Source: Hamiltosporidium tvaerminnensis FI-OER-3-3 (Eukaryota > Fungi > Microsporidia). From it: 64,000 nucleotides of DNA. The stretch lies in assembly GCA_022605425.2 (NCBI GenBank), contig CM061253.1:62001-126000 (forward strand), read 5' to 3'. The notes under the pieces were generated by a model. It worked only from the letters and a program-made list of their open reading frames with translations, had not been told where the DNA came from and ran no database searches. Shown in pieces: positions 2,600 through 44,582 of this stretch (its first letter is position 1; every line of letters starts with the position of its first letter). Both the position numbers and the translations under genes were made by a program.

Positions 2600-3290
2600 A
2601 AATTTATTATAGTAGGCATGGAAAGTTTACACTGCAATCATTTTGGTAAACCAGTAGATAATTTGATTATCTGAATTTAAAAGGCTGGATGTTACTGAGC
2701 AGGTGGCACAACGAAGTGGGGAAAACATACATTTACTCTCACTAAATAGAATAAATTTAAGTTTACAAAACGAAATTTAATTCACACTGTCCGAGAAGTT
2801 CTTGAAACAGGTACAATGAAAAAATGTTGAAGAAGAAGTGATTAAAACCGATTCAAATTTGTAATAATTTATTGGATATTCTTAGTTTTTATAAGAAATA
2901 AAATTAAGTACGCTTATCTAAGTGGGAATACCTTCATAAGATTCATCTCAAATAGTTGAAAATGTAAAAACCGGAGAATCATAGTCTTTAATTGGCTAAT
3001 AAATTTAATCTTGTATTTAAATTGGTTGTGAGATGATCGCTCATGTCATAAACTTGAGGTTTATTGGGCTAAAATACAGTAATATGTATGCTAAAAAAAA
3101 CGCAAGTACGTGAAAAAACAGAGACATTCATTCAGTCGATACAGCACAAAAAGACTCGGAAACGATTTTTTGACCAAAAAAGAAAGTGCGAGTGAAAATC
3201 AAATCTCGGGAGGGTTTAAAGAGGACTATAATTGAGTTTTATATATTGTGTTTAAAACATTGAAACTAAATTTTCATGCGAGTCCTCCAA
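2600..3290 (+). mobile_element. Highly decayed 3' fragment of the RLE non-LTR family
   Basis: Collinear remnants of HNEV, HSVQEIL, ITLIEVGITSQDSLQIVE (gattcatctcaaatagttgaaa) and LANELGL. Confidence 0.65.
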
Positions 3291-3339
3291 GTAAATAGGA
3301 ATTTGTTTTAAACAACTAAAAACAAAAAAAATAATATTC

Positions 3340-3850
3340 TATATTTTAAATCAAGTATCTAAATTGATGAAACGACGAGATATAAAATAAAAAGTCTAAT
3401 TAATGAGATTACGTTGGCCGAAACTTAACCAATCATAAGATAATGTCTTTGGGACGCCTATAACTATGCGAAGCTATGATTTATTCTTTGATTGTCTTTC
3501 ATTCGTAGGGAAGGAACGAGCTAAAAAAGATATAATTAGATGAGCCAAAGATGTTGATAATTGCAAGAAACTGCTGATATACATGCGATATGCAAAAGAA
3601 AGAAAAATGACGGGCAAATTTTTATTTTGTAAGCCACGAAAGTGCTATTTTCATTGCAAAAAGATTTTAATTAGACTATCTATTACAATTGAACTTGCTA
3701 GATCAATATGCATCAATGGAACTCCAGCAATCTTAGGTATGCATTCTGGATTTTTTTCCTACATGAAGAAATAATTTACACAATCTATAATAACACATTG
3801 CATGTACATCACTATACATTTGTGTTGAAAACTTTCAAGATGATTTTTAA
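3340..3850 (+). mobile_element. hAT (Buster/ZBED5-type) transposase remnant, interrupted by the 125-bp repeat
   Basis: Broken translation LDE..DVDNCKKLLIYMRY..KFLFCKP..SICINGTPAILGMHSGFFSYMKK..IITHCM matches the Buster-type LDESTD/FLFCKPL/CTDGAPAMLG/THC motifs. Confidence 0.7.
3409..3530 (+). repeat. ~125-bp retroposed repeat E, copy 1
   Basis: Homologous to 45062-45190 and 50199-50320; A-rich end; flanks TAATTA(G)ATGAG look like a TSD. Confidence 0.7.
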
Positions 3851-6519
3851 AAAAATATCTACTTACTTCAATAAACTATGTAAAATATATCTGTAGGCGA
3901 GCTTCTGTTGATTCTATTTTCTTTGTGTTTTTCTAAAGAAATTGTTGTTGTTCACACCGTGGTTCTATATCACACTAAATATGATGGCTCTCTAAATATT
4001 GCATGCTTAGCTGGGTTGTTGAATTAGTGGAAGAAATTATTTAGTTACAGACTAGTTGAAACTGTTATTTAATAAAAGGTATTGATAGCAAAGACGCTTT
4101 TCTTAGAATAGTCTACTTTGTGGATATATATTTCTACTTGAATTAATCGAAGTATTTGGTGCAAATATAATAGACGGTGCAAAATTATCTGCATTTTGGG
4201 AAGCCTAGAAATTTTAGTAGGTCAAGTTGTCATTTGGAATTTTGTAAATCTTCCATTGCTTGATTCAATTTTTGTCGAAAATCCAAAACTAACAATTATA
4301 CAAATATTGCAAGGCATTGTAATTTTTTTTAGCAAATAATTCGATTGATATTTTTCTACAAGGAATATTATTAAGACTTAAAGTGATAAACCGATTTTTT
4401 TCTCTATAACCTAAATTTGATAGATGATGGTGATTTAAAGAAAGCCAATTTAATTGAAATGTGAGACATTGGGCATATTCAAAAAAAATTCAAACATTAT
4501 AGTAAAAAAATTATTATGTAAGCACTTAGAACGTTTTCTACATTTCGCAAAATAGATATTACCATTACCTCTGCTATTTGCTATTGACTACTTGTATAAA
4601 TAGAGTTTCCCTAAGTTCTGCACACAATACTTAAAGCGAAAAATCGCTCAAATAAAATAATAACCCCGCGTGTCTCTTTCAAAAAAAAGACTCGTTTCAC
4701 GAATATTATAATAAACAAGCAACAACAATCTAGTCATTGGAAAAAAATATTTTAACGTATTTGATACAAAACATGCTTATTTTCTTAAAAAAACTATAAA
4801 TTTACAAAAATCGTAAAACTTTTTCATTAGGGTGTAGATACCAATTTTTATTCAAAGGAAGGCGGCCTCAAAAAGCTACAAACCCATGAATAAAATGAGT
4901 ATCTTCTTGGAAATCGGAATTGATTTTTATAAATATAATCAATTATACCATCCAAGACTAATATTCTAAAAATCAATCAAGAGGGTTCAAAAACACATAA
5001 TACTATAACAAGGCTTTACACTATTTATGAACACAATAGAAAACTAAATTCAAAGCTTGTTTATTTAATATAATAAATTTAAGATAGAATTTTCATGTTG
5101 TTCCTTAAGTTATCAATATAATCTTTATCATGTTTTGATACAACATAAACACCAAGGAATATAAATTAAAGAGAGTGAAATCAACTATAAAACTTTATAA
5201 TGAAAGAATTAAGATTTATATTTTCCTAAAACAGAAACTAAAAATATCGTAAATGAAAAGTTTTAGATAAAATTTAGTGATAATTTGATCCAAAAACAAA
5301 CAAATATATTCCACAAAACATCAAGAAACAAAAAAAATTTATAATACATGTAGGCTTTTGTATATATATTTTTCTTTTTTTTCTTCTTAATATGTCAGTG
5401 GGTAGTATTTTATTCGTAATAAATGTTTTCAATTAGTATTTATTTACCTTATCATAAAGAATAAGCTGTAAAAAAAAAACTAAATTTTTCTTTTTCGGCC
5501 ATACTTACTTAATGTTAAGACAAGGTTTTTATAATACATACATATTGGTGGAATTTATTTTAGTGAATTTTTGTATTTAGCTGTTAATTATTATATTTTA
5601 GTGATTTTCCAACGTATGCTTTAAAAGTATTAGATATTATTTTTAAATGTTAAGATTACAATTATAATAAAGCTTATCTTACAATCTAAAATTATGATTC
5701 TTACTAATCCATAAAAAATAAAAATTTATTCAGATTTCTTTCTGCTTTTTGGTTTAAAATGCGAAAAAAACTATTCTTAAACTAAATTATTCATCTCTTT
5801 ATTATCCACCAGGAGCAATATTCATTCGTAATAGAATTCACAACTCAAACATAAGTATTTTCATTTAAATAGTATTTACAGACAAATTAAATAAAGAAAC
5901 ATTTCAATTTATTGACTAAAATTTTTATTTAAAATTTCTCAGAAAATTTGCTTGAAATTTAAATTTTTAATCAGAGAAGTATATTAGACTTGCCATTTTA
6001 AAAATAATTTAATTATTAGATTTATATTTTTTTGGATTCTATCAGTAAAATTAGAAACATGATGTTTACTTCTTAATTCTTAAAACATATTATACTAATT
6101 ATAAATTATTCCTACCTTGCAATAAACAAATTATTTTTAATTCAAGTTTAATATTTGCATTTTTACCTCGAAACTGTTTTTAGTCATTGTAAATAAATGT
6201 TCTTTCAATATTTAAACTTTTTTAAGCAAACATCACTTGGAAAAATAAAATTAAAAAACTTTTTTATATTTAAAAGATACTTTTCCCAAAAATACATATA
6301 TTTTTATTATTACATCGAATACTTACTTAAATATATTATAAAAAATCTAGGGATCTTTATTTTGCCAGAAATTAGATATATCGATAAAACATAGGATTGT
6401 GTTTTAAGCCGCATATAATACTTTCGAAACATATAATTTTATAAAATCTCTTTTATATTTGCTATACATTCTTCTCATAAATAATATCGTGTAAGAATAA
6501 ATAAAAATGACTTTATTAT

Positions 6520-7091
6520 TTTTTATTTAATAAAATTCTGGGTTAAAATATTTTTTACCATTTTTTACATGTTTTCTTCTACCTCTTTAACCACTTTTGT
6601 CTCTTCTTCCAAATCCGACTCTTCATTTATGTTATTGGTCGGTTCCTCTAAAGTGGTTCCTCCTTGTAAAATAAAGGGGGCTTTATATTTTGGTTTAAAA
6701 TTTTTGGCACCATCTTCCTCTGTTTTCGCTTCTTTTAAAGGGGGTATTGGTTCCTCATGCATCTCTGATCTCATAATAACACCCATTGACGCTCTCTCCC
6801 AGCTCTCTTCGGCATTTAGTCCTGACTCAAGTCCTCTTCGTCGATCAAAGGAAATAGTTTCGACTGTCTTTTTAAGTACTATAGACTGAATGTATGCTTC
6901 TACATTCATGGGTATTTCTAGTCTTTTAAGATGAGATTTATGGTATTTTGTCACAATACCGTCCCAGGTCATCACATAAGGGATTATCTCAACACTACAC
7001 TTATAAATAAGGCCCAACTCATTGGCTAGCAGGTCATACTTCCTAAGTTTTTCAGTTTCAACTATTTGAAGTGAATCTTGGGAAGTGATTC
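6520..7091 (-). mobile_element. 5'-truncated young copy of the RLE non-LTR retrotransposon
   Basis: Near-identical to 12590-13158; 13-bp TSD ATGACTTTATTAT at 6507-6519 and 7092-7104. Confidence 0.93.
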
Positions 7092-7894
7092 ATGACTTTA
7101 TTATAAATTCAAAAGCCTAAAAATTATAATCTTACAATAATTCGTAATTTTTCTATATTTAGTATCTAGAAATGAAAATATACCAAGCAAGTTCTTTATA
7201 AAACTATACATAAAAATGTAAACCTTTTTTTATAAAAATTTACCTTTGGCATAGTAATTAAAAGTTATCTAAATTTATATTATTTTTTGAATATCATAAC
7301 CATTGAGTATAGAGTTCTACCTTTATAATTGTGATTATAGAATACTTACAAACAATCGAATTTTAAAATAAAATAAATTTTTATTTAATAAAACCTTTGT
7401 TATATAAAATCTATTATATAACCAACAGTGTCTATATGAAAGCTATAACTCACCTGGAACTATAAAATAATTCGAAAAAAATGGGACCCTTTAGAAATAG
7501 TGTTCTGATTAAGAATATGACTCTTATATTAGTTCCTTGATCTTACACAGCTAATAAGAGTGTGTAGAAGTAGAAAATAAAACGTCTCGAAACATTCATA
7601 CTCCAAATAAACATTTGCATTGACTATCGGTAACTATTCTTTTTAGATTGTAGCACATCATATGAACAGAATTTTTTTCATATTTTTTAAAGTTTTAATT
7701 TTAAAAATTGCATTCAATTTTAATCATTTCGTTCGGATTTTGTTTCTAATTATTTTAAAAATCCATGAACAACTGTAAATAATATTAATATTTAAAAGCA
7801 TCTTTACTGGAGATTTATTTATATCCTTTATAATATTTCAATAATTTTATTTAAAAATATCACATCTTTTAAACAAAAATCGCAAGTGTTATAT

Positions 7895-8570
7895 TTTTTT
7901 CATAACATTAACGTAGTTCTGGTTTTAACATAAATAGCTGCCGGCAACACTACATTAGTACCTCTTACGATACTTACTCCCAAAGTCTCTCATCTAAAAG
8001 GTATGTAGAACCCAATTAACGGGCGAGGTAGTTGCCAATAATTTGTTAATTTTGTTGCATAGAGTGTGATCGTAGGTCTAAACCTCCCATAAAACTTTTA
8101 AGTCTATCAGATTCCACTTACTCTATACTTTTCGAACCGAATAAACTTACTGCTAAAATATTTATCTCGGTGACTTATATGAAGTCCATTTAACAGTGCA
8201 ATGTCATATTAACAAGTATTCTGCTATTTAGCTTCCTGGCTTTTTAAAAGGTATGCTTTTCCGTATCCTCTAAACACTAAGTTTTCAACCCAAGTAATAA
8301 GGCTAGGTTTACATGCTTCTACATGGAAATTACCTACAGATTCACTCGTTGTTTCCAATCTAGTTACATGGAAATAAAAACCTAACTCTTTAGAAAAAAA
8401 ATTCACAATTTTATAGATTTTCTCTTCTTTCTAAAACTCCCCTAGAACAACTTAAAATCTAATATGTTATTGTATTGCAGGAATCCAAACAATGCCATAG
8501 ATCAATTTCATCTGATAATTACTAAGTAGATAGTTTTTAGTGCGGTTATCTTCTATTCACAAATTATTCT
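7895..8570 (-). repeat. ~650-bp dispersed repeat C, copy 1
   Basis: Collinear with 53020-53665 and 59875-60530 (e.g. acagtgcaatgtcata, aaggctaggtttacatgctt, gtgtgatcgtaggtc); strand assigned by the A-rich end. Confidence 0.85.
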
Positions 8571-8904
8571 TTCAATAACATCATAAAATTGTATACTTGA
8601 CTAAATTAAAAAATTTAATAAATTTAATTAGGAAGTTATACAAGAATGAATAAATCAATCCAGCATATCACTAGCAGAAACTGTTTTTTTCTGACAAAAA
8701 AAACAAATCACACGAATTAAGATTAGATGTAAAGTGAAAGGAATAAACGGAAAATAAATAGCTTAATCCTCAAAAAAATAAAACAAAAAACAGCAGAAGA
8801 GAAATATACTGACTTAAAAAAACAATAAATTTTTAGTAGTAAATTCCTCAAAACCCTTTTACGAATTCCGAATTCAAAAAAAACTAAATAAAAAACAAAT
8901 ACAT

Positions 8905-9072
8905 TTATAATTATCTAAATTAAAATAGTAAAAGATTATAATTCAGTAATATATATAATAGTAAATTATCTAAATTAAAAATGTAAATGATTATAACTGA
9001 GTAATAAATATTTATAAATTACTAAATTTAAAGTGTAAAAGATTATAAATTAGTAAATTAAGATTATAAATA
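8905..9072. repeat. AT-rich degenerate tandem repeat (~55-bp unit, ~3 copies)
   Basis: Recurring AATTATCTAAATTAAAA..GTAAA.GATTATAA. Confidence 0.6.
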
Positions 9073-9267
9073 TACTCACAAATATTTTTTCTGTAGAATA
9101 TAAAATTCAGTTAGTTTTTATAAGATTGACACCTAATACATTATAATTTATCTATAATTTTACCAAAAAAAATGTTAAAATATTTATTTTAATTATTTGA
9201 TTTCATTTAGATAAAAATAAATAGAAATATTCTTTAAATATAATTTTAATGTAAAAACAATCTCTGT

Positions 9268-9378
9268 TCTTATCAATCCTTATTCTTCTTATTCTTATTC
9301 CTCTTATTCTTCCTATCAATCCTTATTCTTATTCTTCCTATCAATACTTATTCCTCTTATCATTATTATTCTCATTCC
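9268..9378. repeat. Pyrimidine-rich simple repeat (TTATTC / TATCAATCC), the insertion site of the RLE element
   Basis: Direct reading; C/T-rich sequence resumes after the element at 13159-13389. Confidence 0.7.
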
Positions 9379-12300
9379 ATATGAGTAGAAGGAAAAAAGT
9401 AGACAGCGAAAATATAAAAATTGAAAAAATAAAGGCTGTAAACAACTTGGAGAACAGCGCAGGAGAGATTTTGATGTGTGATGTAGATGTAGCAATGTTA
9501 TCCGAGAGAATTCCACCTCCACCGACCTTCCATAACACCACCCACCAACCACCAAGAAGTAGTTGCCAGACTAGTCTAGTCTGCTTGGTTGACACCATAC
9601 CCTCGTCTTCTGGTACCGATGCCACTGCGTTTGGACCAGCCAACGGCATGACAAACCTCAATACAGATGCCATTCTAGAAGGGAATCGAATGATGGTATT
9701 GCACTCAATACTTGACTCTGTCACAGTCGTAGAGCAGGAATGGCCTAGATCTGCTATTCTAGAGTTCAAAAGGGTTTGATAGAATGCCCAGAAATGGCTG
9801 GCTCGCTACTCTGAGGTACTATAATGAGAAATTTAGCTGCACACTAGATATAGATGCGTTTAAAAAATTCCACAAAAGGCGGCAGAAAGAGAAACTAAGC
9901 AAGAAGAGAACAGAGAGATATGTAGAATCGCCATTTTTCTGACTGAGCAATGTACCTTTACTGACACGGAGTACATAAACCTGTGAGATAAATTTTTGAG
10001 TAAAATCAAACAAATCTCACAGAAGAAAATTAGAAAAGAGGTGGTCAGAACTCGAAATCTTCCAAGTGAATTGGTTGAAAGTAAAGTTTTGGACCTTATT
10101 AATCGAATTATCGGTGATATGCTGATTCTTATGTGCCGATGACGATAACATAAGTAGCACGGATAATCCAGGCAGCCCAGGTATGCTATGACGAGGCAAC
10201 ACGCAAAGAAAAGCCTAGATCCGCTTGGAAGGAAAACATAGAAAGTAAAATTTCTAAGTTAGTACTTTCCAAAGATCTTCTCGAGAAGGCTTGTAAGCAG
10301 GAAAAGCTCTCCACTTCTGAAACGAAGAGCCTTAGAAAATCATGCGAGAATTTAATTTAAACTTGAGCAGTGTAACTGATCTTTCTGAGGCTTTAGTTAA
10401 GAAGAATGAATCTTTGAATGTTTACGAGAAAAAAATTGCGATACATGAAAGTAGGAAGCAATTCCGAAAAGAGAATCGTATGTTTGAGCTTTTCCATGGT
10501 CAATTTTATCGTGGGTTATCTGAGCGTATAGAATCCGAGCATGTGGTTAGCCGTGATGAAATTGTGAGTTTTTGGTCTACAATGTGGAACAAAATGATGA
10601 GACAGTCACGTATGATGATTATTTGATTCCATTTGTATCAGATAATCATCTGACCACGTTTCCTTCACTTGATGAATTTGTAAATATCATTAATTGGTTC
10701 CCAATTGGAAAGCTGCTGGAATTGATGGTATTTACAATTTTTTCATCAAGAAACTTACAACTCTTCACAAATATATTTATGATATTGTGAAAGTTATACG
10801 TTTAGAAGGAACACCTCAAGCTGATTGGTTTTACTGCGGGCTTACGTATTTGATACCGAAAGGAATTCCATGAAGAGGCTCTGACTACAGGCCAATCACT
10901 TGTATGTCCAACCTTTTTAAGTTAACCACAAAGTGTGTAACGAAAGTCGTTCAAATTGAAGTGGAAAGGCGAGGGTTGCTTACAGAGAACCAATTAGGGG
11001 CGGTAAGAGGTGTGCAGGGAGCGAAAGAGCAGGCTCTACTGAATATTGCCTTAAATAAAGAGTATGGAAACAATCTTAAGGCAACATGGATTGATGTTAA
11101 AAAAGCTTATAATTCAATAGATCATGCTTATTAAACTCAATGCATTGAAAACCAAAATTTACCTGATCTGATCTTAAAATTTATTGCAGATAATTATGTA
11201 AAAATAGATAGTTGATATATCAGTAGGGCCTGAAAAAATCATGAGCAAGAAGATTGATAGAGGGATTCTACAAGGAGATAGTTTGTCACCATTGTTATTT
11301 GTGTTGTGTATGGATCTATTAAGCCGAAAGCTTAATGAAAAACGCACAAAAGTGACAGTACAAACAGATGCAGAATCCCATTCTACTAATCATCTCTTGT
11401 TTATTGATGATCTAAAGCTACTTGCAAAAGACAGTTCCACATTGAGTGCTATGACAGGCGAGGCAAAGGAATTTTTAGAGGTGATTGGCTTTGAGATTAA
11501 CAAAGAGAATTCAGCCACAAATGATACGTGTTGTGAAGATACTGCTACTCTTCTAGAAGGTGTTAGTGTTTACAAATATTTAGGAATAATGGAAGATAGC
11601 AGAGGAATTCCAACACGTAGCTCATTTGAAGAAGTACAAAGCAAACTGATAGCAAAAGTTGAAAGACTTTGTCAGGCTAGATTAAACGCAAAAAAATTAT
11701 TTTCAGCAATCAATCAACATGCGATATCGTTAATCAACTACCACATAGGAGTACTTCGACTTGAACCGGCTGACTTCTCTAAGTTAGATGATGCACTGCG
11801 TGCGGTGTATGTGAAAAATAAGATACATATTCGCCCAGGATGTAAAGAGCGTTTGTATCTTCCTAGAACAGAACTTGGAAGAGGCCTACATAGTGTTTAG
11901 TTGCGAAGCGAACATATGCTTCTGCAACTCTTGGATTGTCTGAAAAAAAGTAAAGAAATATCAACTAGACGAGCAGCAATCCTCAAGGTGGACAATAATA
12001 ATAAAACCCATCTTGCACTAATAAAAGGCTTCTTAAAAGTAAAGTACAGGTTGGTAGAAGAAGTCACTAAGAAAAGTTTAGAAGAAGCTCAACTTGCAAA
12101 ACTATATAACGAAATAGAAAAACGAAAACTACATTCAAAGTTATATAATGCAAGGAAAAATGAGCTTGTGAGTGTTAGTGACTCTTCAAGATGGCTAAAG
12201 AGAGGAAATATTAGGCCACGAAATGAAGCTGTGTTCTGCTATATCCAGGATATAAATGTATTCTGGGGAGCAGATGGTGTGTGTCAACATTGCGGGAAGG

Positions 12301-13158
12301 CTGGTAAGACTGTAGATCATCTAGCAACTAGATGTGAAAAAATGCTAGGCCATGATTACACTAGACGGCATAATGAAGTGGTTAGATGCCTACACCTACT
12401 TCTTCTAAATAGATATAAGTTTAAGTCTTCAAAACGAATAAGGAGTCACTCAGTTCAAGAAATTCTTGATAATGAGTATGCAGAGATAAGAGTAGACACC
12501 AGAATAAAAACTGATGTTAAAATTCGGAATAACAGACCGGACATATTTATTTTAGATAAGAAGAAGAATAAGATAACACTCATTGAAGTAGGAATCACTT
12601 CCCAAGATTCACTTCAAATAGTTGAAACTGAAAAACTCAGGAAGTATGACTTGCTAGCCAATGAGTTAGGTCTTATTTATAAGTGTAGTGTTGAGATAAT
12701 CCCTTATGTGATGACCTGGGACGGTATTGAGACCAAATACCATAAATCTCATCTTAAAAGACTAGAAATACCCATGAATGTAGAGGCATACATTCAGTCT
12801 ATAGTACTTAAGAAGACAGTCGAAACAATTTCCTTTGATCGACGAAGAGGACTTGAGTCAGGACTAAATTCCGAAGAGAGCTGGGAGAGAGCGTCAATGG
12901 GTGTTATTATGAGAGCAGAGATGCATGAGGAACCAACACCCCCTTTAAAAGAAGGGAAGAGAGAGGAAGATGGTGCAAAAAATTTTAAACCAAAAAATAA
13001 AGCACCCTTTATTTCACAAGGAGGAACCACTTTAGAGGAACCGACCAATAACATAAATAAAGAGTCGGATTTGGAAGAAGAGACAGCAGTGGTTAAAGAG
13101 GTAGAAGAAAACATATAAAAATGGTAAAAATATTTTAACCCAGAATTTAATTAAATAA
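9379..13158 (+). mobile_element. Full-length but inactivated non-LTR retrotransposon with RT, CCHC knuckle and restriction-like endonuclease (R4/Dong-like clade)
   Basis: RT motifs YRPITC, ENQLGAVRG, WIDVKKAY, GILQGDSLSPLLF, HLLFIDDLKL, YKYLG; CQHC..TVDHL..C; RHNEV; RPDI..IEV..EKLRKY. 14-bp TSD ATTATTCTCATTCC at 9365-9378 and 13159-13172. Several stops and frameshifts. Confidence 0.95.
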
Positions 13159-13373
13159 ATTATTCTCATTCCTATAATTTTTTTTCTTATAAATTTAGAT
13201 TTTTATCTAATAAATATTCTTCCTCCTTACTAATATTCTTCCTTCTATTAATATCCATCCTTCTATTAATATTTTTCCTCCTTATTAATTCTCACTCTAA
13301 CCTCTATCCCCCCTTCTTCACCATCTTTACCCTCCTTCATATCCTTTACCACACTAATCCTATTTATTTCTTT

Positions 13374-13389: not shown

Positions 13390-16300
13390 ATGTTCAACTT
13401 CTTATTTATAAGTATTTCATTTCCTCTCTTCATTTTCATTTATCGAATATTTTTTAAATCAAGCAAAAAGAAAGAACAACCTACACAGATACAGACACCA
13501 CATCAACACACAAACACACTTCTAACAAAAATACCAATTTATTTCTTTCATCCTTCACCACACATATTCTTCAAAACACATATTTTACAACCACAAAGTA
13601 TTTTTTCATTACCTTGTATTTTACTAAACGGAAAGATACAAATAAAGACACATCTACCACCTTACATAACCACTACCACTCATACATCCACACCTATTCT
13701 TATAAATGGTCCGTTACATTTACTAACCAATACTTCTCTTTCTTTTACTTGTTTAGTAAGTACAAGTGTTATTTCTTTTAATCAAAATATTTATCCTTCT
13801 TTATATTTAACACCCATACTTATTTATCATTTGAGAAGTGTTATTTCTATGTTAATTTCTTATTTTCATTTAATGGTTTATTTAGCAGCTTTGGATGTTA
13901 AAATTGAGACTTGTTTGACAAATTTTATTCTTAAAAATAAAAATATTAAAGAAATTAATTTACCGGCAGGTTATATTTATAAGAGGTATGGGGTACCACT
14001 TGATACTGTTTTTTATGTAGTTAAAGGGTCACTTGTAATCGAGTGTGATAGAGGAATAGAAGGATTTGGGGTAGGACAAGGGTTAGGGGGGGTGATAGAG
14101 GTATGTCGGAGGGTGATAATAACAGTAGTAAATTAGAGGGTGATAATGATAATGATATGTTAGAGGGTGTTAATAATAAGGATATGTTAGAGGGTGTTAG
14201 TGAGAAGTATGGTAGCCAACAGGGTGTTAACAAACTATCTAATGAACAACAGGGTGTTAATAAGAGTACTAATGAACAACAGGGTGTTAATAAGAGTACT
14301 AATGAACAACACCCCTTTAATCACACACCTAATAACAACTCTTCTGTCCTTTCAGATACTGAAAATACAAAATTCGTTTTGCAAAAAAACACTTTTTTTT
14401 CGGTTTTGAATATTTTTACACCCTGTTACACCAACACAACAATACGTACACTAACACCTGTTACTCTTAAGGTACTTAATATTTGTCATATAACACTAGA
14501 ACCTATAAATAACACCCCTTTATTTAGTAGTCATATAAATAACACCCTTATAACCAACAGTACTGATAATAACACCCCGTTAACCACACCACATCTAAAT
14601 AACACCCCTTTATTTACTACTACTCTTAATATAACCCCTTTGTTTGCTAGTCTTATAAAAGACCCTATATTAACACTAGCTGATAGACACTGTGATTGGA
14701 TACGTTATATGCCAGGAGATATTATAGTAGAAAAGGGGTGTAAATCCTTATACGCATATTTTATAGCATACGGGTTGGTAAAAGACAATACAAATAACTC
14801 CTTTTACTCTAAAATGACTTTAGGAAGTAAAGAGGTTATTTCTAACAGTAAATATATTTGTACTTATACAGCTGTTAAAATAACTGATATAATAAGAATA
14901 CCAAGAGTTTTTATTGATACTGTGTTTTGCACATGTCCTGGTGTTAGTATGATGTGTGTTAGTGATGTGTTTAAGGGGGATGTTAAATTACCTGGTAAGA
15001 CTGTTATTGTAGTACCTGGTGGTAAAGGTAGGGGTGTTAGTGATAGGAGAGTTGATGGTTATATGGGTGTTAAATATAAAGATAGAGATTATAAGGGTGT
15101 TAATAAGAGAGTAGATGATTTTAAGGGTGTTAAATATAGATATAGTAATATAAAGGGTGTTAATAATGTGAATCGTAAGGAAGAGGGTGTTATTAACAGT
15201 AGTAATGAACAACACCCTATTATTGACTCTAGTAATGAACAACACCTTGTTAACACCAGTACCTATGAACAACACCCTGTTAACACCAGTACCTATGAAC
15301 AACACCCTGTTAACACCATATCTAATAAACAACACCCTATTATTAACAGTAGTAATGAACAACACCCTGTTAACACCATATCTAATGAACAACACCCTGT
15401 TAACACCAGTACTGATAAACAAAACCCTCTTAACAACCCATCTAATGAACAACACCCTGTTAATAACACACCCCTCTTAAAGTATAACTCTGGCTGTAAC
15501 AGTGCAGATTATATACTACAAAACACAGTAAACCATAACACCTGCCTAGACACCCTTTTATTTAGCTGTAGATTAAGAACAGTAATAGGTAAAAGGTGTT
15601 ATTTTATAACAAGTACTACAATAACACGTATTCTTAATAGAAATACTTTTAACACTCTAAGTAGTCTTATAATGACTCAATATTTAGAACATATAGAACA
15701 ATCATATAGTGTTATTGTTATTTATATAGAGAATAGATATTCTCGTATGTTTAAGATGTTAAGTAAGATGTGTAATGTTATATTAGTTGTAGGAGAAGGT
15801 GATATTCTGTTGGAAGAGGGGTGTTGTTGTAGTGTAGAACGTGTAAGGCTATATGAAGAGAGGGTGGGTGTTAATGACAGGTGTGATAAGGATAGTAATA
15901 TAAAGGGTGATAGTAATGATACTAATATAAAGGGTAATAATAAGGGTGATAGAGATACTAGTATTTTAAAGGGTAAGAGTAAGGATAGTAATATAAAGGG
16001 TAATAAGAGTACTGGTGATATAAAGGATATTATGAGTGTTAATATAAGTACTAGTAATATAAAGGGTGTTAATGATAGGGATATGTTAGAGGGTGATAAT
16101 GATAATGATATGTTAGAGGGTGTTAGTAACACTATTAATGAACAACAGGGTGTTAGTAAGAGTAGTAATAAACAACAGGGTCTTAACAATGTCACAAGTA
16201 CTTATCACCCCCTTAATAATACACCTAATACTTATCACCCTCTTAATCATCTAGACAATAATCCCACTGATAAATCCATTGGAAAATACCTTATGTACGA

Positions 16301-17327
16301 TAAAAACCCCAACCCTACTATAACTAAGTACCTGATACCTACCTATACTAGAATACACCACGTTGTTTCACCTTCTCGTAACGACAGACTCTGTTTAAAA
16401 GATTATGAGAGACTAGCAAGATATCTTTTGAACAAAAGAATAGGACTCGTTTTAGGAGGAGGAGGAGCACGTGGATATGCACATTTAGGAGTAATACGTG
16501 CATTAGAAGAGAACAACATACCAATAGATGTAGTAGGAGGTACCAGTATGGGAGCATTTATAGGTGGTTTATACAGTAAAGATATAAGTAGTATTAGCTG
16601 TTACAAATGGTGTAAAAAAATGAGTGAATTTATGAGCAGCAAATGGAGATTTTTTACAGATCTGACACTTCCCTTGTGTTCCATGCTTAGCGGTTACAAT
16701 TTTAATAGAATTATAAAATATTTTTTTAAAAATTTAAATATTGAAGATTTATGGTTGGAATATTTCTGTATCAGTACTTGTATTAACAGATATGAAGAAG
16801 TAGTACATGATAAAGGAATATTATGGAAATATATACGATCTAGTATGACACTAAGTGTATATTTACCACCAATGAATGATAAAGAAGGAATGCTTATGGA
16901 TGGAGGGTATACAAATATTGTACCTGGAGATGTTATGATTAAGAAAGGAGTTAGTAGAGTTATATGTGTAGATGTAGGTAGTGTTAGTGATAATAAGTAT
17001 GAGAAGTATGGGGAGTATTGTAGTGGGTGGTGGGTTATTTGGAAGAGATTGTGGGGTAAAAGGGTTATAATGATGGGTGATATACAATATAGGTTAGCAT
17101 ATGTTAATAGTGAAGGGAAACTTAGAGACTTGGAGAAGAGTGGGGTGTTAATTATTAAGCCTGATATACCTTTTAGTGGAATGGATTTTAATAAATTTGA
17201 TGAGATTGTTGAGTGTGGGTATCGGTACGGGTTAAAGGTTGTGGAGGAGTGGAGGAGAAATGGGGTTTATAAGAAGTACTTTAGTGGGTGTGGGTTTAGG
17301 GTTAGGAAAAGGAGGTTTTCAGTGTAG
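13390..17327 (+). CDS. NTE1: NTE1/PNPLA6-like lysophospholipase (N-terminal TM, cNMP-binding-like domains, patatin domain), split into 13390-14136 and 14103-17327 by a frameshift in a G7 run
   Basis: Patatin motifs GLVLGGGGARGYAHLG, GTSMG and DGG; cNMP-like segments LPAGY..FYVVKGSL and YMPGDIIVEKG..YFIAYGLV; hydrophobic N-terminus. One extra G at 14086-14092 joins the two ORFs. Confidence 0.9.
14090..14640. repeat. In-frame GGGTGTTA / AACACCC minisatellite block 1 inside NTE1
   Basis: 30-bp units AATGAACAACAGGGTGTTAATAAGAGTACT, followed by AATAACACCCC units. Confidence 0.9.
15010..15480. repeat. In-frame minisatellite block 2 inside NTE1 (KGVN units then NEQHPVNT units)
   Basis: About 10 exact 30-bp-period units AATGAACAACACCCTGTTAACACC preceded by AAGGGTGTTAA units. 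Confidence 0.9.
15865..16265. repeat. In-frame minisatellite block 3 inside NTE1
   Basis: AATATAAAGGGT units, GATATGTTAGAGGGTG units, then ACTTATCACCC units. Confidence 0.85.
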
Positions 17328-17329
17328 GA

Positions 17330-17640
17330 ATGGGGTGTTTGGGTGATGATAGAGGATTGTAGGGTGTTAGTCCTTAGATAATAGAGAATAGGGTGTTATT
17401 ATAGAAATAGTAAGTAAGAGGGTGTTATTATAGAGTAAAGAGGATTATAGGGTGTTATTCCTTGGATAATAGAGAATAGGGTGTTATTATAGAGGTAGTA
17501 AGTAAGAGGGTGTTATTATAGAGGCTGAGGATTATTAGGGTGTTAATAACAGTATAGATGATTATAGGGTGTTGGTTATAGAAGTAGTAAGTAAGAGGGT
17601 GTTAGTAACAGTATAGAGGATTCTAAGGGTGTTACTACAG
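17330..17640. repeat. Non-coding AGGGTGTTA minisatellite 3' of NTE1
   Basis: About 11 AGGGTGTT cores at ~29-30 bp spacing with variable spacers. Confidence 0.9.
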
Positions 17641-18455
17641 TATAAAGATTTGTTTATAAATAAAACATTTATTTCCAGTTTTTATTTTTTAAAATAATTT
17701 TATTTATAACTGTTTTTAGATATTAAAGGCATGTTAATACACATGATTTACTACTCACACTGTATACTTAAAACTCTTAGAAAAAGCTTAGAACGGTTTA
17801 ATGATTTATTTTAAGGAAATGTAAATAGAAAATAAGTTGGTAACTAAAAATTCTGAATATTATTTTCTTGTTTTTATTTACTTTTTTCTATTTTGTTCGA
17901 CAATTTTTTTATATTTCTACTTCTTTTTTAATATTTTTAGTCGTTGCTTGGATTTCAATTCTTTTTTCTTTTTTCTTTTTTTTGTTATTTATTTTGTTTC
18001 TGTATGTAATAGGGTATGGGTTGTTTGTTCACCCGGCTCTGTTTATGATATTCAGTGATGCGTTTTCGACTCTTGTGATCATTTAATATTTAATACGATT
18101 TTATTTGGCTATAAAAGAAAATTTTTCTCTGGTGTTTTTTGGCTAATGATACCTAAATATATAATTATACTTTAATAAACTTTAAGTTTATAGCAAAATA
18201 TTTTATTATATTTAATTTAAATATCATTCCAGGTTATGATATAAGACAGTTTTTTCTTAACTATGATTAGCGGTGGCGATTCAGACATTGGTTCTATCTA
18301 AGCCATAATTTTATTGTAGAATTGGTGTTTTTTTAAGCTAAAACAACGTTTAAAATTCTTGTACATTACACAAAAAAAATAACAATTACATACAAATCAT
18401 ATTATGAATTTGCTAAAATAAAAATTTATTTGGTTCATACCGAATGCTTTATTAT

Positions 18456-21400
18456 TTTATTTAATTAAATTCTGGGTTAAAATATTTTTACCATTTTTAT
18501 ATGTTTTCTTCTACCTCTTTAACCACTGCTGTCTCTTCTTCCAAATCCGACTCTTTATTTATGTTATTGGTCGGTTCCTCTAAAGTGGTTCCTCCTTGTG
18601 AAATAAAGGGTGCTTTATTTTTTGGTTTAAAATTTTTTGCACCATCTTCCTCTCTCTTCCCTTCTTTTAAAGGGGGTGTTGGTTCCTCATGCATCTCTGC
18701 TCTCATAATAACACCCATTGACGCTCTCTCCCAGCTCTCTTCGGAATTTAGTCCTGACTCAAGTCCTCTTCGTCGATCAAAGGAAATTGTTTCGACTGTC
18801 TTCTTAAGTACTATAGACTGAATGTATGCCTCTACATTCATGGGTATTTCTAGTCTTTTAAGATGAGATTTATGGTATTTGGTCTCAATACCGTCCCAGG
18901 TCATCACATAAGGGATTATCTCAACACTACACTTATAAATAAGACCTAACTCATTGGCTAGCAAGTCATACTTCCTGAGTTTTTCAGTTTCAACTATTTG
19001 AAGTGAATCTTGGGAAGTGATTCCTACTTCAATGAGTGTTATCTTATTCTTCTTCTTATCTAAAATAAATATGTCCGGTCTGTTATTCCGAATTTTAACA
19101 TCAGTTTTTATTCTGGTGTCTACTCTTATCTCTGCCTACTCATTATCAAGAATTTCTTGAACTGAGTGACTCCTTATTCGTTTTGAAGACTTAAACTTAT
19201 ATCTATTTAGAAGAAGTAGGTGTAGGCATCTAACCACTTCATTATGCCGTCTAGTGTAATCATGGCCTAGCATTTTTTCACATCGAGTTGCTAGAAGATC
19301 TACAGTCTTACCAGACTTCCCACAATGTTGACACACACCATCTGCTCCCCAGAATACATTTCTATCCTGGATATAGCAGAACACAGCTTCATTTCGTGGC
19401 CTAATATTTCCTCTCTTTAGCTATCTTGAAGAGTCACTAACACTCACAAGCTCATTTTTTCTTGCATTATATAACTTGTAATGGAGTTTTCGTTTTTCTA
19501 TTTCGTTATATAGTTTTTCAAGTTGAGCTTCTTCTAAACTTTTCTTAGTGACTTCTTCTACCAACCTGTACTTTACTTTTAAGAAGCCTTTTATTAGTGC
19601 AAGATGGGTTTTATTATTATTCTCCACCTTGAGGATTGCTGCTCGTCTAGTTGATATTTCTTTACTTTTTTCCAGACAATCCAAGAGTTGCAGAAGCATA
19701 TGTTCGCTTCGCAACTCAACACTATGTAGGCCTCTTCCAAGTTCTGTTCTAGGAAGATACAAACGCTCTTTACATCCTGGGCGGAGATGTATCTTATTCT
19801 TCACCAACACCGCACGCACTGCATCATCTAACTTAGAGAAGTCAGCCGGTTCAAGTCGAAGTACTCCTATGTGGTAGTTGATTAACGATATCGCATGTTG
19901 ATTGATTGCTGAAAATAATTTTTTTGCGTTTAATCTAGCCTGACAAAGTCTTTCAACTTTTGCTATCAGTTTGCTTTGTACTTCTTCAAATGAGCTACGT
20001 GTTGGAATTCCTCTGCTATCTTCTATTATTCCTAAATATTTGTAAACACTAAGACCTTCTAAAAGAGTAGCAGTATCTTCATAACACGTATCATTCGTGG
20101 CTGACTTCTCTTTGTTAATCTCTAAGCCAATCACCTCTAAAAATTCCTTTGCCTCGTCTGTCATAGCATTTAATGTGGAACTGTCTTTTGCAAGGAGCTT
20201 AACATCATCAATAAACAAGAGATGATTAGTAGAATGGGATTCTGCATCTGTTTGTACTGTCACTTTTGTGTATTTTTCATTAAGCTTTCGGCTTAATGGA
20301 TCCATACACAACACAAATAACAAAGGTGACAAACTATCTCCTTGTAGAATCCCTCTATCAATCTTCTTGCTCATGATTTTTTCAGGCCCTACTGATATAT
20401 CAATTTTCCATTTTGATATAATTACCTTAATAAATTTCAGGATCCAATCAGGTAAATAAAGTTTTAAAATGCATTGAATTAAATAAGCATGGTCAATTGA
20501 ATCATAAGCTTTTTTAACATCAATCCATGTTGCCTTAAGATTGTTTCCATATCCTCTATTTAAGGCAATATTCAGTAGAGCCCGCTCTTTCGCTCCCTGC
20601 ACACCTCTAACTGCTCCCAACTGGTTCTCCGCAAGCAACCCTCGCCTTTCCACTTCAAGTTGAACGACTTTCGTTACACACTTTGTCGTTAACTTATAGA
20701 GGTTGGACATACAAGTGATTGGCCTGTAGTCAGAGCCTCTTCGTGGAATTCCTTTCGGTATCAAATACGTAAGCTTGCTGTAAAACCAATCAGCTTGAGT
20801 TGTTCCTTCTAAACATATAACTTTCACAATATCATAAATATATTTGTGAATAGTTGTAAGTTTCTTAATGAAAAAATTGTAAATACCATCAATTCCAACA
20901 GCTTTCCAATTGGGAAGCCAATTAATGATATTTATAAATTCATCAAGTGAAGGAAACGTGGTCGGATGATTATCTGATACAAATGGAATCAAATAATCAT
21001 CATATGTGACTGTGTCATCATTTTTGTTCCACATTGTAGACCCAAAACTCACAATTTCATCACGACTAACCACATGCTCGGATTCCACACGCTCAGATAA
21101 CCCACGATAAAATCGACCTCGGAAAAGCTCAAACATACGATTCTCTTTTCGGAATTGCTTCCTACTTTCATGCATCGTAATTTTTTTCTCGTACACATTC
21201 AAAGACTCATTCTTCTTAACTAAAGCCTCAGAAAGATCAGTTACACTGCTCAAGTTTAAATTAAACTCTAGCATGATTTTCTTAAGGCTCTTCGTTTCTG
21301 AAGTGGAGAGCTTTTCCTGCTTACGAGCCTTCTCGAGCAGATCTTTGGAAAGTACTAGCTTAGAAATTTTACTTTCTATGTTTACCTTCCAAGCGGATCT

Positions 21401-22240
21401 AAGCTTTTCTTTACGTGTAGCCTCGTCATAGCATACCTGGGCTGCCTGGATTATCCGTGCCACTGCAGTTATCGTCATCGGCACATAAGAATCAGCATAC
21501 TCACCGATAATTCGATTAATAAGGTCCAAAACTTTACTGTCAACCAATTCACTTGGAAGCTTTCTAGTTCGAACCACCACTCCCCAATTTCCTTCTCCGA
21601 GATTTCTTTGATTTTACTCAAAAATTTATCTCTCAGGTTTATGTATTCGGTGGTGTCAGTCAGGGTGCATGGCTCAGTGAGAAAAGTGGCGATTCTACGT
21701 CGCTCTCCATTCTCTTCTTGCCTTATTTCCTTTTCTGCCTCATTTTTTGCGAGTTTTTAAAACGCATCGATATCTAATGTGCAGCCGAATTTCTCATTAT
21801 AGTACCTCAAAGTAGCGGGCAGGCCTTTTCTGGGCATTCTCTCAAACCTCTTTTGCACTGCTAGAAGCAGATCTAGGCCATTCCTGCTCTACGACTGTGA
21901 CAGAGTCAAGTATTGAGTGCAATACCATCAGTCGATTCCCTTCTAGAATGGCATCTGTATTGAGGTTTGTCATGCCGTTGGCTGGTCTAAACGCAGTGGC
22001 ATCGGTACCAGAAGACGAGGGTATGGTGTCAACCAAGCAGACTAGACTAGTCTGGCAACTACTTCTTGGTGGTTGGTGGGTGGTGTTATGGAAGTTCGGT
22101 GGAGGTGGAATTCTCTCGGATAACATTGCTACATCTACATCACACATCAAAATCTCCCCTGCGCTGTTCTCCACGTTGTTTACAGCCTTTATTTTTTCAT
22201 TTTTTATATTTTCGCTGTTCACTTTTTCCTTCTACCCATA
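18456..22240 (-). mobile_element. Second full-length RT+RLE non-LTR retrotransposon copy (inverted)
   Basis: 719-aa RT ORF 19421-21580 plus in-frame downstream ORFs separated by two point stops (TGG>TAG at 19421, TAT>TAG at 19136); same 5' start as copy 1; no TSD found. Confidence 0.95.
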
Positions 22241-33858: not shown

Positions 33859-34332
33859 ATGGATAGAGATAGTAATAGATTAGAGGTTTTTAGTGATAGA
33901 ACTGGATTAGAGGGTGTTGGTGACAGTAATAGATTAGAGGTTGTTAGTAACAGTAATAGAATAGAGGGTGTTGATTATAGTACTAATACCTTGCACCCTG
34001 TTAATACCAATACTACTTCTTTTACTCTTTGGAATAGCTTTGTCTTTGGTGACTGTAAATTATCTGAAATATTAAAATATTTTAAAAGGGTGTGGAATGT
34101 AGATATAAGTATGGTAACAATAAGAGATACTGTTGTGTTTTGTACGTTTTATGATAATGAGAGGTTTAAAAATTATTTAGAAAAATTTATAAGTGAATTG
34201 TCTTGTAAGAAAGAAGGTGATGGTATTATTTACTGTGGTGTAGAGTGTTCGTTTGATATTGATGGTTATAACTTTCCTGAGGTGCTTGTTAAGTTTAGGA
34301 GAGAGAGAAAGGGAGGTATTAGGATTTTATGA
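33859..34332 (+). pseudogene. UBA1: Isolated C-terminal ubiquitin-fold domain of ubiquitin-activating enzyme E1, preceded by GGGTGTT-type repeats
   Basis: FTLWNSF..CKLSEILKYFKRVWNVDISMV..FISEL..C..D..FPEVLVKF follows the E1 UFD pattern FTLWDRF..TLxEFLxYFK..xVxML..SEL..C..VPYV; no upstream E1 domains in the window. Confidence 0.7.
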
Positions 34333-42759: not shown

Positions 42760-44582
42760 TATTGTGTATTGATCTATGGAGCCGAAAGCTTAATGAAAAA
42801 AACCCAAAGATGACATTAAAGACATATGCAGAATCTCGTGAGGCTAATAATATTATTATTTGATGATCTCTGATCCCTGAAAAAGATGAACAAACATTTT
42901 AGAAAATGACGGAAGAGGTGAATGAAAAATATACGATTAGAAATAAACAAAGAGAAATCGGCTACAAAAAACCCGTGTTTTGAAGATACAGCCACTCTTT
43001 TTCAATGAAAAGGTTATTAAAAATACTTAAGAACAAAGGAAAATAGCAGAGGAATCCCAAGAAGTATGTCGTTCGAGGAAGTACAATAAAACATAAAGCA
43101 CGAGTAAAAAAACTTTTTCGCAACAAAATTGAATGCTAAAAAATTATTTTCTGCAAAAAATCAACATTCGATATTGTCAACCCACTGCCAAATAGAAGTA
43201 CCTTTTCTTTAACAACTGACTTCTTTAAGTTAGATTATGCAGTGCATGCACTGCTAGTACAGAATAAATGCATCTACGCCTAGGATGTAAATAACGTCTA
43301 TACTTTCCCCGTAAAGAACTATGAAGAATTTTATATAGTGTAGACTTTAAAAGCGAATATGATTTTGCAACACTTGGATTGTCTTAAAAAACATAAAAAT
43401 ACATCGACCAGAAGAGCAGCAATCCTAAAGGTTGAAAATAATTATAAAACCCACTTTTCACTAAAAAAACTTTTTAAAAATTAAATACGAGTTGGAAAAG
43501 AAGTCACAAAGAAGAATTTTGAAGAAGCTCAACTAGCTAACCTATATAACGAAATCAAAAACCGAAAAGTACATTCAATGTTATAAAGCTAGTAATAACG
43601 AGCTGGTAAGTGTAAATGACTCCTCAAGAGGGTTAAAGAAAGGAAGAGTAAGACCACCTGATGAAGCAGTGTTCTGTTCTATATAAGATAGAAGTAGATT
43701 GCCGCGGTGCCGAAGGTATTTCACACACAGCAACTAAATCTGTCTAACGGTAGACTCTTAGCAACAAAATGTAAGAAAAAGCCTGGAGTGACTATACTAG
43801 ACCAAATAATGAAGTTGCACAATACAAATACTTACTCCTATTAAATAAATATTAATTCAAGTCTTTAAAACAAATTAGGAGTCACTCAGTTCAAGAAATT
43901 ATTGATAATGAGTATGCAGAGATAAGAGTGGACACCAGAATAAAAACTGATGTTAATTTCGGAATAACAGACCCGACATATTTATTACTGATAAGAAGAA
44001 GAATAAGATAACCCTCATTAAAGCAGGAATCTCATACTAAAACTTTCTTCAAATAGTTGAAAAGGAGAAACTTTAGAAGTACGAACTAGTAGCAAATAAG
44101 TTCGCCATCGTTCATAAATGTAGTGTAGAGATAGTTTCTTATGTGATGACTTGGAACGTTATTGGAACAAAATACCATAAGATGTTGTTAAAAGACTACA
44201 AATACCCATGAATGTAGAGGCAGTTATACAATCTATAGTACTCAAAAAGACGGTCGAAAAAATTTCTTTTGGTCAACGATGAGGACTTGAGTCAGGACTA
44301 AATACCGAAGAGAGCTGGGAGAGAGCGTCAATTGGTGTTATTATGAGATCAGAGATACATGAGGAACCAATACCCCCTTTAAAAGAAGCGAAAAGAGAGG
44401 AAGATGGTGTTAAAACGGAAATTAGAAAAAGTCTTTTACCCCTTATTTTAGATAGCATAATCACAGCAGAGGAATACAATTAATGCAAATGAAAACTCGG
44501 ATTTAGAAGAAATGATGGAAGTGGTTGAAATAGTAAAATAATTATTTAAAAGATAAAATTTGTTAACCCAGAATTTTATTGT
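42760..44582 (+). mobile_element. 5'-truncated, decayed RLE family copy with patches of near identity to young copies
   Basis: Collinear with 11300-13155 from gccgaaagcttaatgaaaaa to ttaacccagaatttt. Confidence 0.9.

Follow-up and report, generated by a model that had tools for sequence, protein, structure and literature searches.

The Jeffreys-type hypervariable minisatellites of the human genome are dispersed arrays of 10-60 bp units that share one short G-rich core, show an asymmetry of G and C between strands, and gain or lose copies one or more full units at a time; whether their core is a signal or a by-product is still debated. Here, we describe a comparable repeat family in the microsporidian Hamiltosporidium tvaerminnensis, based on a window of 64,000 nucleotides (contig 8, bases 62001-126000 of the assembly) that contains the gene NTE1, and on counts over the whole genome (21,638,905 bp, 17 contigs). 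As in the Jeffreys type, many dispersed arrays with different units carry one G-rich core (here GGGTGTTA), with strand asymmetry and unit-wise copy variation. Unlike the Jeffreys type, the Hamiltosporidium arrays lie in frame in conserved housekeeping genes as well as in intergenic DNA, carry both core orientations in a preferred G-then-C order, and occupy the 21.6-Mb genome of a microsporidian. We propose that the NTE1 locus belongs to a genus-specific, dispersed minisatellite family with a single shared core, subject to unit turnover, copying between units, and rare micro-inversion, a reading that we regard as probable while leaving real room for others.

The low-complexity insertions of Plasmodium proteins offer a second parallel, being in-frame, disordered, and copy-variable stretches between conserved blocks that are commonly put down to slippage under weak selection. 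In both cases, an AT-rich parasite genome carries in-frame, disordered, copy-variable inserts in essential proteins; those of Plasmodium, however, are mostly homopolymers or short codon repeats, without a G-rich 9-nt core, a 27-42-bp unit, or a rule of orientation. The palindromic elements of Rickettsia are selfish repeats that are likewise dispersed in conserved open reading frames (ORFs), inserted in frame and translated, but they are single elements of 100-150 bp with real hairpin potential, whereas the Hamiltosporidium arrays are tandem, have short units, and form no stable hairpin. Foldback elements and head-to-head telomere fusions place a G-strand array before a C-strand array and read alike on either strand; the arrays described here lack the complementarity of such arms, and their unit is not TTAGGG. 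Template switching has been documented to invert loops at perfect hairpins (PMC8794818; PMC5453318). The likeness to those cases is that a multi-base change equals the reverse complement between two short inverted repeats, with the flanks untouched. The differences are that the Hamiltosporidium stem has only 4 bp and that its product is amplified and shuffled by tandem-repeat dynamics, so that most differences in state need not be fresh inversions.

Within the genus, Haag et al. (2020) mentioned asparagine-rich, in-frame expansions in Hamiltosporidium MCM proteins, with "only one clear expansion" and data not shown; these expansions split conserved motifs, and the authors were undecided between inteins and tolerated expansions (PMC6944219). 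The same genome paper cast doubt on the long introns that ab initio prediction had called by the hundreds to thousands (PMC6944219). On our analysis, the MCM expansions are probably the same phenomenon as the core arrays, although the repeat unit, the core motif, the genome-wide spread, and the non-coding copies are not described in the MCM passage of that paper. The core arrays offer a concrete sequence basis both for the Hamiltosporidium "expansions" and for the hundreds to thousands of doubtful introns. Term searches of two Hamiltosporidium genome papers (PMC6944219, PMC10542269) found no description of the family apart from the MCM aside, and a full-text literature search for the motif together with microsporidia returned nothing relevant.

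Microsporidia are the standard example of organisms with reduced genomes and proteins, and the large-genome member studied here holds ~8,000 copies of one core. Its arrays lengthen some of the most conserved eukaryotic proteins, among them PRP8, CPSF1, TAF2, ATR/TOR-type kinases, and NTE1.

Anatomy and dispersal of the arrays

Counting either strand, GGGTGTT occurs 50 times in the window against 2.9 expected, with 41 of the 50 copies at 14165-17633 and spaced by 27, 29 or 30 bp. Genome-wide there are 7,941 copies, most of them within arrays of 27-, 30- or 39-bp period, compared with 816 of the reversed motif, which served as the control. Core neighbours in the same orientation and 10-40 nt apart number 3,600 genome-wide against 6 for the control, and the spacers between them are varied. 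Tandem arrays, called with Tandem Repeats Finder (TRF), have periods of 27, 30, 29/88, and 39 bp in the window, and like spacings were found in 10 other loci; these are thus minisatellites in the usual sense of head-to-tail units of 10-100 bp. Our locus sample consists of 11 genome stretches, 10 of which were picked because they carry the AACA/TGTT-framed 11-mer discussed below. In the sampled arrays, dispersed and with different spacers, one short core recurs: each unit combines the core and a few common flanking bases (A-x-R-GGGTGTT-A) with a 17-30-nt spacer that differs, so that what the family shares is GGGTGTTA in either orientation.

The initial annotation had centred on the 11-mer framed by AACA and TGTT. 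This 11-mer does define a real sub-family, with 9 copies of AACASSSTGTT in the window (0.08 expected) and 742 sites genome-wide (11 for the control), and the motif is therefore not confined to the NTE1 locus. It is, however, a minority form that accounts for 723 of the 7,941 cores (9%), whereas GGGTGTTA is common to the units. A longer signature of the NEQQGV-encoding unit, the 18-mer AATRAACAACA-SSS-TGTT, has 175 sites in ~30 loci on at least 8 contigs, against 0 for its control. As had been suspected, the repeat is a dispersed family that sits in frame inside unrelated conserved genes: the sampled arrays lie within PRP8, CPSF1, TAF2, an ATR-like kinase, a duplicated PI3/4-kinase, and NTE1, as well as in intergenic DNA. 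A recurrence in the window away from NTE1 had also been reported, and there the plus strand at 33864-33972 carries a 27-bp array of the same core family, seen by both TRF and core counts, at the start of a 157-aa ORF (33859-34332).

NTE1 itself occupies 13390-17327 on the plus strand and is identified by the Pfam domains Patatin (2.5e-23) and NTE_Ploop as a gene for a patatin-like lysophospholipase. Its product best matches an H. tvaerminnensis "putative phospholipase" and can be aligned with 8 other microsporidian orthologues; two entries each of H. tvaerminnensis and H. magnivora, taken from short-read assemblies, fall in its protein cluster beside the two gene models of this contig. Four array blocks, all on the plus strand, interrupt it. 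Block A (14109-14340) begins with 27-bp units read as LEGD or LEGV and continues with 30-bp NEQQGV units that have GGGTGTT on the coding strand, and it ends in a single CCC-type unit at 14308. Block B (14500-14665) is made up of 30-bp units that encode NNTPL and have AACACCC on the coding strand. In block C (15020-15470), six G-type units (xKGVN) come first and nine CCC-type units (NEQHPVN) follow with no shift in the 30-bp phase, and block D (15862-16290) has IKGx and LEGV units, two QQG units, and then C-type YHPLN units.

Alignment bears out the earlier suggestion that the blocks are insertions: they lie between conserved segments, are absent from all 8 of the microsporidian orthologues, and reach ~175 residues in the largest case. 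Edhazardia NTE1 has long insertions at similar places, but these are non-periodic and lack the signature peptides. As far as present data go, sequence comparison suggests that the family is specific to Hamiltosporidium. AlphaFold2 (run on 38 sequences) models the blocks as coil with a predicted local distance difference test score (pLDDT) below 50, at residues 1-52 (A), 126-186 (B), 310-478 (C), and 597-727 (D), while the cNMP-binding-like, P-loop-like, and patatin domains score 80-97. Hence the blocks are predicted to be disordered linkers between domains, in keeping with the view that the repeats write low-complexity protein. Such arrays can reveal the extent to which essential proteins put up with disordered inserts when selection is weak.

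The units hold their frame through NTE1, as the initial annotation had stated, with one ORF (14103-17327) open across all four blocks. They then carry on as non-coding DNA directly past the stop codon (17330-17640, plus strand; 17351-17634 by TRF), where 11 perfect GGGTGTT cores are spaced at 29-30 bp under an 88-bp higher-order period; this array is non-coding because the C-terminus before it, KRRFSV, matches the KRRYSV of the orthologues. Older gene models of NTE1 (P0001, P0122, P0125) exchange the conserved C-terminus for a reading of the 3' array by way of a predicted intron, probably a mis-annotation owing to an array that is open in several frames. The N-terminal quarter of the gene lies in a separate frame (13390-14136) that breaks at a run of seven G (14086-14092, plus strand), through which model P0001 reads. 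As each of the four short-read assemblies (L017-L020) has one more base in this run, the long-read assembly probably miscounted the homopolymer and so created the frameshift. In this assembly, the break divides NTE1 into two annotated genes (P0123, P0121).

The dependence on frame holds beyond NTE1. For this count, an ORF was any frame that stays free of stops for at least 250 codons. Between cores of the same orientation, 283 of 315 spacings in ORFs are divisible by three (90%; mostly 30, 27, 39, and 60), compared with 51 of 98 outside, where 28, 29, and 31 are common; the expectation that units would measure a multiple of three in coding sequence is thereby borne out. Differences between assemblies follow suit, with indels of 30 and 60 bp in coding arrays and of 27 and 88 bp in the non-coding one. 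The public annotation of this assembly, for which the paper describing it (PMC10542269) states that Iso-Seq data were used, keeps all NTE1 arrays in an intron-less coding sequence (CDS). In view of the open frame, the periodicity, and this intron-less CDS, the arrays are very probably translated.

We considered whether the blocks might be introns or inteins and set this aside, given one ORF across four blocks, spacings of which 90% are multiples of three, no intein domain found by Pfam, and the intron-less public CDS. Mini-introns were also entertained, as the mean intron length given for Hamiltosporidium is 28 bp (PMC10542269) and the spacer contains a TACTAAT...CAG string; the idea was dropped in view of the open frame, the periods divisible by three, the two orientations, and the same public CDS. 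In a separate observation, PRP8 (contig 1, 855001-865000; L002) is stuffed with arrays and falls into four successive stop-free frames (864-2657, 2900-5536, 5469-8156, and 8141-10000 of that stretch), the breaks between which may be further homopolymer errors or real frameshifts.

Conservation of the core

At what level is the core maintained? To avoid ascertainment bias, we scored positions bracketed by cores at -60, -30, and +30. Perfect cores filled 49 of these 61 unbiased slots, and the per-base match to the core was 0.90-0.98, while adjacent units agreed at spacer positions at 0.50-0.84 (~0.64 identity). Expressed as information, the core holds 2 bits per position and the spacer 0.1-1.3 bits. 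In the usual frame (xxG GGT GTT), the two T at four-fold synonymous positions match at 0.93 and 0.98, compared with a use of GGT for 25% of Gly and of GTT for 42% of Val elsewhere in the window. In the 3' non-coding array, 11 of 11 cores are perfect although the 88-bp higher-order copies match each other at 83%. The cores in ORFs are spread over all six frame classes (sense 278, 32, and 19; antisense 77, 46, and 7). The core thus persists at synonymous sites, in more than one frame, and where nothing is encoded, so that DNA is the level at which constraint or drive acts.

These data bear directly on the proposal that selection favours functional peptide repeats (EGVN, QQGVN, QHPVN) and that the identity of the DNA simply follows. 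The encoded peptides are hydrophilic, and 84% of the sense cores in ORFs are in one frame, read G-V, as that proposal would have it. Part of this bias is explained by the stop that GGGTGTTA-R creates (TAA/TAG), which closes one of the other two sense frames. Moreover, the core also occurs in the remaining frames, on the antisense strand, and in non-coding arrays, its synonymous positions are as fixed as the rest, and the encoded regions, for which disorder is predicted, differ in copy number. Selection on the peptide cannot account for the pattern of the core, in contrast to constraint on the DNA or preferential copying of intact cores; the synonymous sites and non-coding arrays already largely refute the peptide proposal, which we consider very improbable.

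A second alternative is that the core is a functional cis-element, bound by a sequence-specific DNA- or RNA-binding protein and serving in chromatin organisation, boundaries, or replication, with its presence in coding sequence a tolerated by-product. A core far better kept than its spacer, even at synonymous sites and in non-coding arrays, would suit such an element, as would the regular spacing of ~30 bp and an orientation that is non-random relative to the conserved blocks. Yet copy number varies freely across strains and species, the housekeeping ORFs that contain the arrays are unrelated and share no regulatory logic, no candidate for a binding factor emerged, and a copying bias for intact cores would yield the same pattern of conservation. 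We therefore hold a cis-element to be unlikely, if the most credible of the alternatives considered here. As to the shared-core minisatellite family that we favour, it offers a natural system in which to ask why minisatellite cores persist, whether for a function or through a bias in copying.

Unit turnover and the two states of the loop

NTE1 was compared across five assemblies from two species, namely this one and the four independent short-read assemblies. They differ by unit indels and a few substitutions only: one 30-bp unit of block A is missing in L018-L020, block C has independent 60-bp deletions in L018 and L020, and the non-coding 3' array has deletions of 27 and 88 bp in H. magnivora (L018). 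A PI3/4-kinase gene tells the same story between paralogues. It is present as an inverted segmental duplication ~97 kb apart on contig 1 (1165001-1175000, L003; 1262001-1272000, L004), and the copies are 95-99% identical over 8 kb, with arrays that differ by 57- and 60-bp indels within the ORF. Together with units gained and lost in CPSF1, the indels of 30, 60, 27, and 88 bp show the change in copy number by whole units between lineages that is characteristic of minisatellites. The arrays offer hypervariable markers for the Daphnia magna host-parasite model.

The central observation of the initial annotation was that the loop between AACA and TGTT occurs in two states. Both forms are present as reported, AATGAACAACA-GGG-TGTTAA at 14241-14260 and 14271-14290 and AATGAACAACA-CCC-TGTTAA at 15354-15373 and in neighbouring units. 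As AACAGGGTGTT and AACACCCTGTT are exact reverse complements, that is, one 11-mer read on either strand, counts of the 11-mer alone do not reveal whether the loop or the whole unit has been flipped, a question that the spacer answers. The 18-mer introduced above, whose left flank is not palindromic, carries GGG in 69, CCC in 29, and CGG in 2 of the first 100 sites listed. In the sampled stretches, the flanks of units with CCC on the coding strand match those of GGG units better in the same orientation (mean 0.49, best 0.71) than when inverted (0.29 and 0.45). The claim that the two forms differ by inversion of the loop and not of the unit therefore applies to 11 of 15 CCC units, whose flanks match the same way round; the remaining 4 make up a second class that is the true reverse complement of G-type units. 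Accordingly, inversion of the whole unit as the source of CCC is ruled out by flank orientation for the class read as QHP and accepted for the class read as NNTP.

Among the 742 sites whose loop consists of G and C only, 723 are GGG or CCC and 19 are intermediates (e.g. CGG, GCG, CCG), so that intermediates are far from being as common as the two main states. Ordinary point mutation, or an artefact of assembly, is thus hardly credible as the origin of the loop states. A few intermediates do exist, as point mutation would produce, but they are only these 19; an artefact is contradicted by the four short-read assemblies, which give the NTE1 arrays base for base, unit indels aside. We treat this alternative as already refuted and its chance as negligible. 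A GGG or CCC loop between AACA and TGTT with the flanks the same way round is as expected of a micro-inversion, and because the loop is reversed within an unchanged flank and intermediates are few, the observation of two states holds. On the sequence evidence, GGG and CCC correspond to the two directions in which the core can lie. Such arrays can show how short inverted repeats let a motif switch strand within a reading frame.

What did not stand is the hairpin. As single-stranded DNA, the unit forms an AACA/TGTT stem of 4 bp with an energy of -0.9 kcal/mol (z 0.18 and -0.42), and 99 and 61 of 200 shuffled sequences fold at least as well. A stable hairpin, or a hairpin-forming palindromic repeat of the REP, RPE or MITE kind, is ruled out on this basis. 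The "hairpin" is a symmetry and not a structure, one that may act as microhomology for a template switch.

Do the loop states change between lineages? The polymorphism that had been anticipated across assemblies exists in CPSF1, between strains and between species, but not at NTE1, where the states are fixed. CPSF1 contains a mosaic array whose 30-bp units are organised in a 90-bp higher order, and in it units with identical flanks differ in the loop alone. Another H. tvaerminnensis strain has CCC at unit 9, where this genome has CGG between the same flanks. H. magnivora departs from this genome in the state of several aligned units. In one of them, the third counted from the anchored 3' end (CCC vs GGG), a single-nucleotide polymorphism (SNP) 11 nt upstream is linked to the change. 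The rare CGG occurs twice in this genome, 60 bp apart, and once among the eleven comparable units of the other strain, and identical donor units for the state differences lie 60-90 bp away. The linked SNP and the doubled CGG indicate short-tract copying between units over repeated fresh inversion, and the CPSF1 differences have probably come about by such copying. Hence the loop states change on the timescale of strains, and most of these changes can be existing states that were shuffled.

Array polarity and the proposed mechanism

The arrays are also polar. Oriented by their core, they contain 29% G and 4.7% C. A G-type core is followed within 10-40 nt by a C-type core at 256 sites genome-wide, or ~164 when a 43-mer of a retrotransposon is left out, compared with 58 in the opposite order; this 43-mer makes up ~1/3 of the convergent core pairs listed. 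In the sampled loci, G-then-C order within 60 bp occurs 25 times against 11 for the reverse (p=0.03). Adjacent full 11-mers show no polarity (8 vs 5). The usual order on the coding strand within blocks is plain G units, AACA-framed G units, and then CCC or C units. Since G-then-C reads alike on either strand, it is uninformative on the direction of transcription. As for the 43-mer, it is a fixed sequence in the retrotransposon ORF (12899-12941 and 18674-18716 in the window, with many genome sites) in which GGGTGTT and AACACCC face each other, 29 nt apart.

This order would be expected from a symmetric insertion process, either a foldback-type element whose arms are inverted tandem arrays or a break repair that joins two G-strand-extended 3' ends, as such a process would yield G-then-C whatever the orientation of the gene. 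In its favour, besides the 256 (~164 without the transposon pair) against 58, are the order of unit types that the blocks have in common (g, then Q, then H/c), the long identical sequence shared by blocks A and D (a stretch of 36 nt), and a G/C strand asymmetry reminiscent of telomeres. However, the arms are not complementary beyond the core and a few bases: block C folds no better than its shuffles (z -1.39), and in a non-coding block in another sampled stretch (L006) the inverted matches are only 18-33 nt long and centred on the core, which together rule out foldback at block level through long complementary arms. In addition, the central QQGV/QHPV units hold their spacer in one orientation, and adjacent full 11-mers lack the polarity. 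We regard a symmetric insertion process as improbable. In the same non-coding block, the C-type arm (L006, 6440-6810) is rich in CCCTAAT and ACCCTCTAA, resembling a telomeric C-strand, and the G-type arm, 1 kb to its left, has 39-42-bp units.

An origin from telomere repeats was examined separately. The contigs end in CCCTAA/TTAGGG repeats, in line with the H. tvaerminnensis telomere repeat TTAGGG given in the genome paper (PMC10542269). In 15.6 kb of oriented arrays, TTAGGG was seen 20 times against ~14 expected from composition. Interstitial telomeric repeats are thus ruled out as the source, the telomere being plain TTAGGG and not enriched in the arrays beyond composition, and the same counts also speak against a symmetric insertion process.

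How, then, would the shared-core minisatellite family have formed? Its units measure 27-42 bp and have a nearly invariant 8-9-nt core (R-GGGTGTT-A), on a G-rich and C-poor strand, and a variable spacer. Arrays gain and lose whole units, in this view by slippage or unequal exchange, and short stretches would be copied between units. In coding DNA, only in-frame, stop-free, and hydrophilic versions would persist, as disordered linkers between conserved housekeeping domains, while intergenic arrays would drift to periods not divisible by three. In the NEQQGV/NEQHPV sub-family, a 3-nt micro-inversion between AACA and TGTT would turn a plus-strand core into a minus-strand core and leave the spacer unturned; we infer that it arose by a template switch across the short inverted repeat, probably on rare occasions, and later changes of state at a unit would come mostly from copying between units with common flanks. 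The core is preserved in the DNA itself, whether because it is constrained or because intact cores would be copied preferentially. The anatomy of the arrays, their dispersal, their status as insertions, the turnover by units, the conservation of the core in DNA, and the changes of loop state between lineages come directly from the data; the mechanism of inversion, the bias in copying, and the route by which arrays enter new genes are proposals.

Several points weigh against this mechanism. By itself, slippage accounts neither for the polarity of the arrays nor for a core that is conserved 10-fold better than its spacer. The 4-bp AACA/TGTT stem, without measurable hairpin stability, is a weak substrate for template switching, and no loop-state change was seen at NTE1 among the five assemblies or between the paralogues L003 and L004. 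Every flip in CPSF1 can be explained by copying between units, and a de novo inversion was not directly caught. Translation of the arrays is inferred from frame, periodicity, and public annotation. Lastly, no terminal repeats were seen by eye at the edges of the NTE1 blocks, where target-site duplications were not searched for, and this counts against a symmetric insertion process as well.

A bolder possibility, on which we would place little weight, is that GGGTGTTA is the signal or template of an active process that writes arrays with a fixed polarity, be it a nick- or break-triggered 3' extension templated by RNA or by the repeat, or a symmetric, foldback-like mobile element. Were this true, conserved gene segments would be bracketed like miniature chromosomes, with the C-strand on the left and the G-strand on the right, and the family would represent a novel class of selfish repeat, borne by repair, that can interrupt even PRP8 and not destroy it.

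The surroundings of NTE1 are themselves repetitive. Two 3.8-kb copies of a non-LTR (long terminal repeat) retrotransposon, 95% identical, flank the gene (9380-13162 on the plus strand and 18453-22240 on the minus strand), their 3' ends facing it. The element has an RVT_1 domain followed by a C-terminal ORF with a zinc-knuckle and a PD-(D/E)xK-like domain, and more fragments lie at 6522-7098 and 42937-44409. Between the 3' end of the upstream copy and the NTE1 start codon, a C/T-rich 18-bp tandem repeat of ~4 copies (13213-13289) falls outside the core family.

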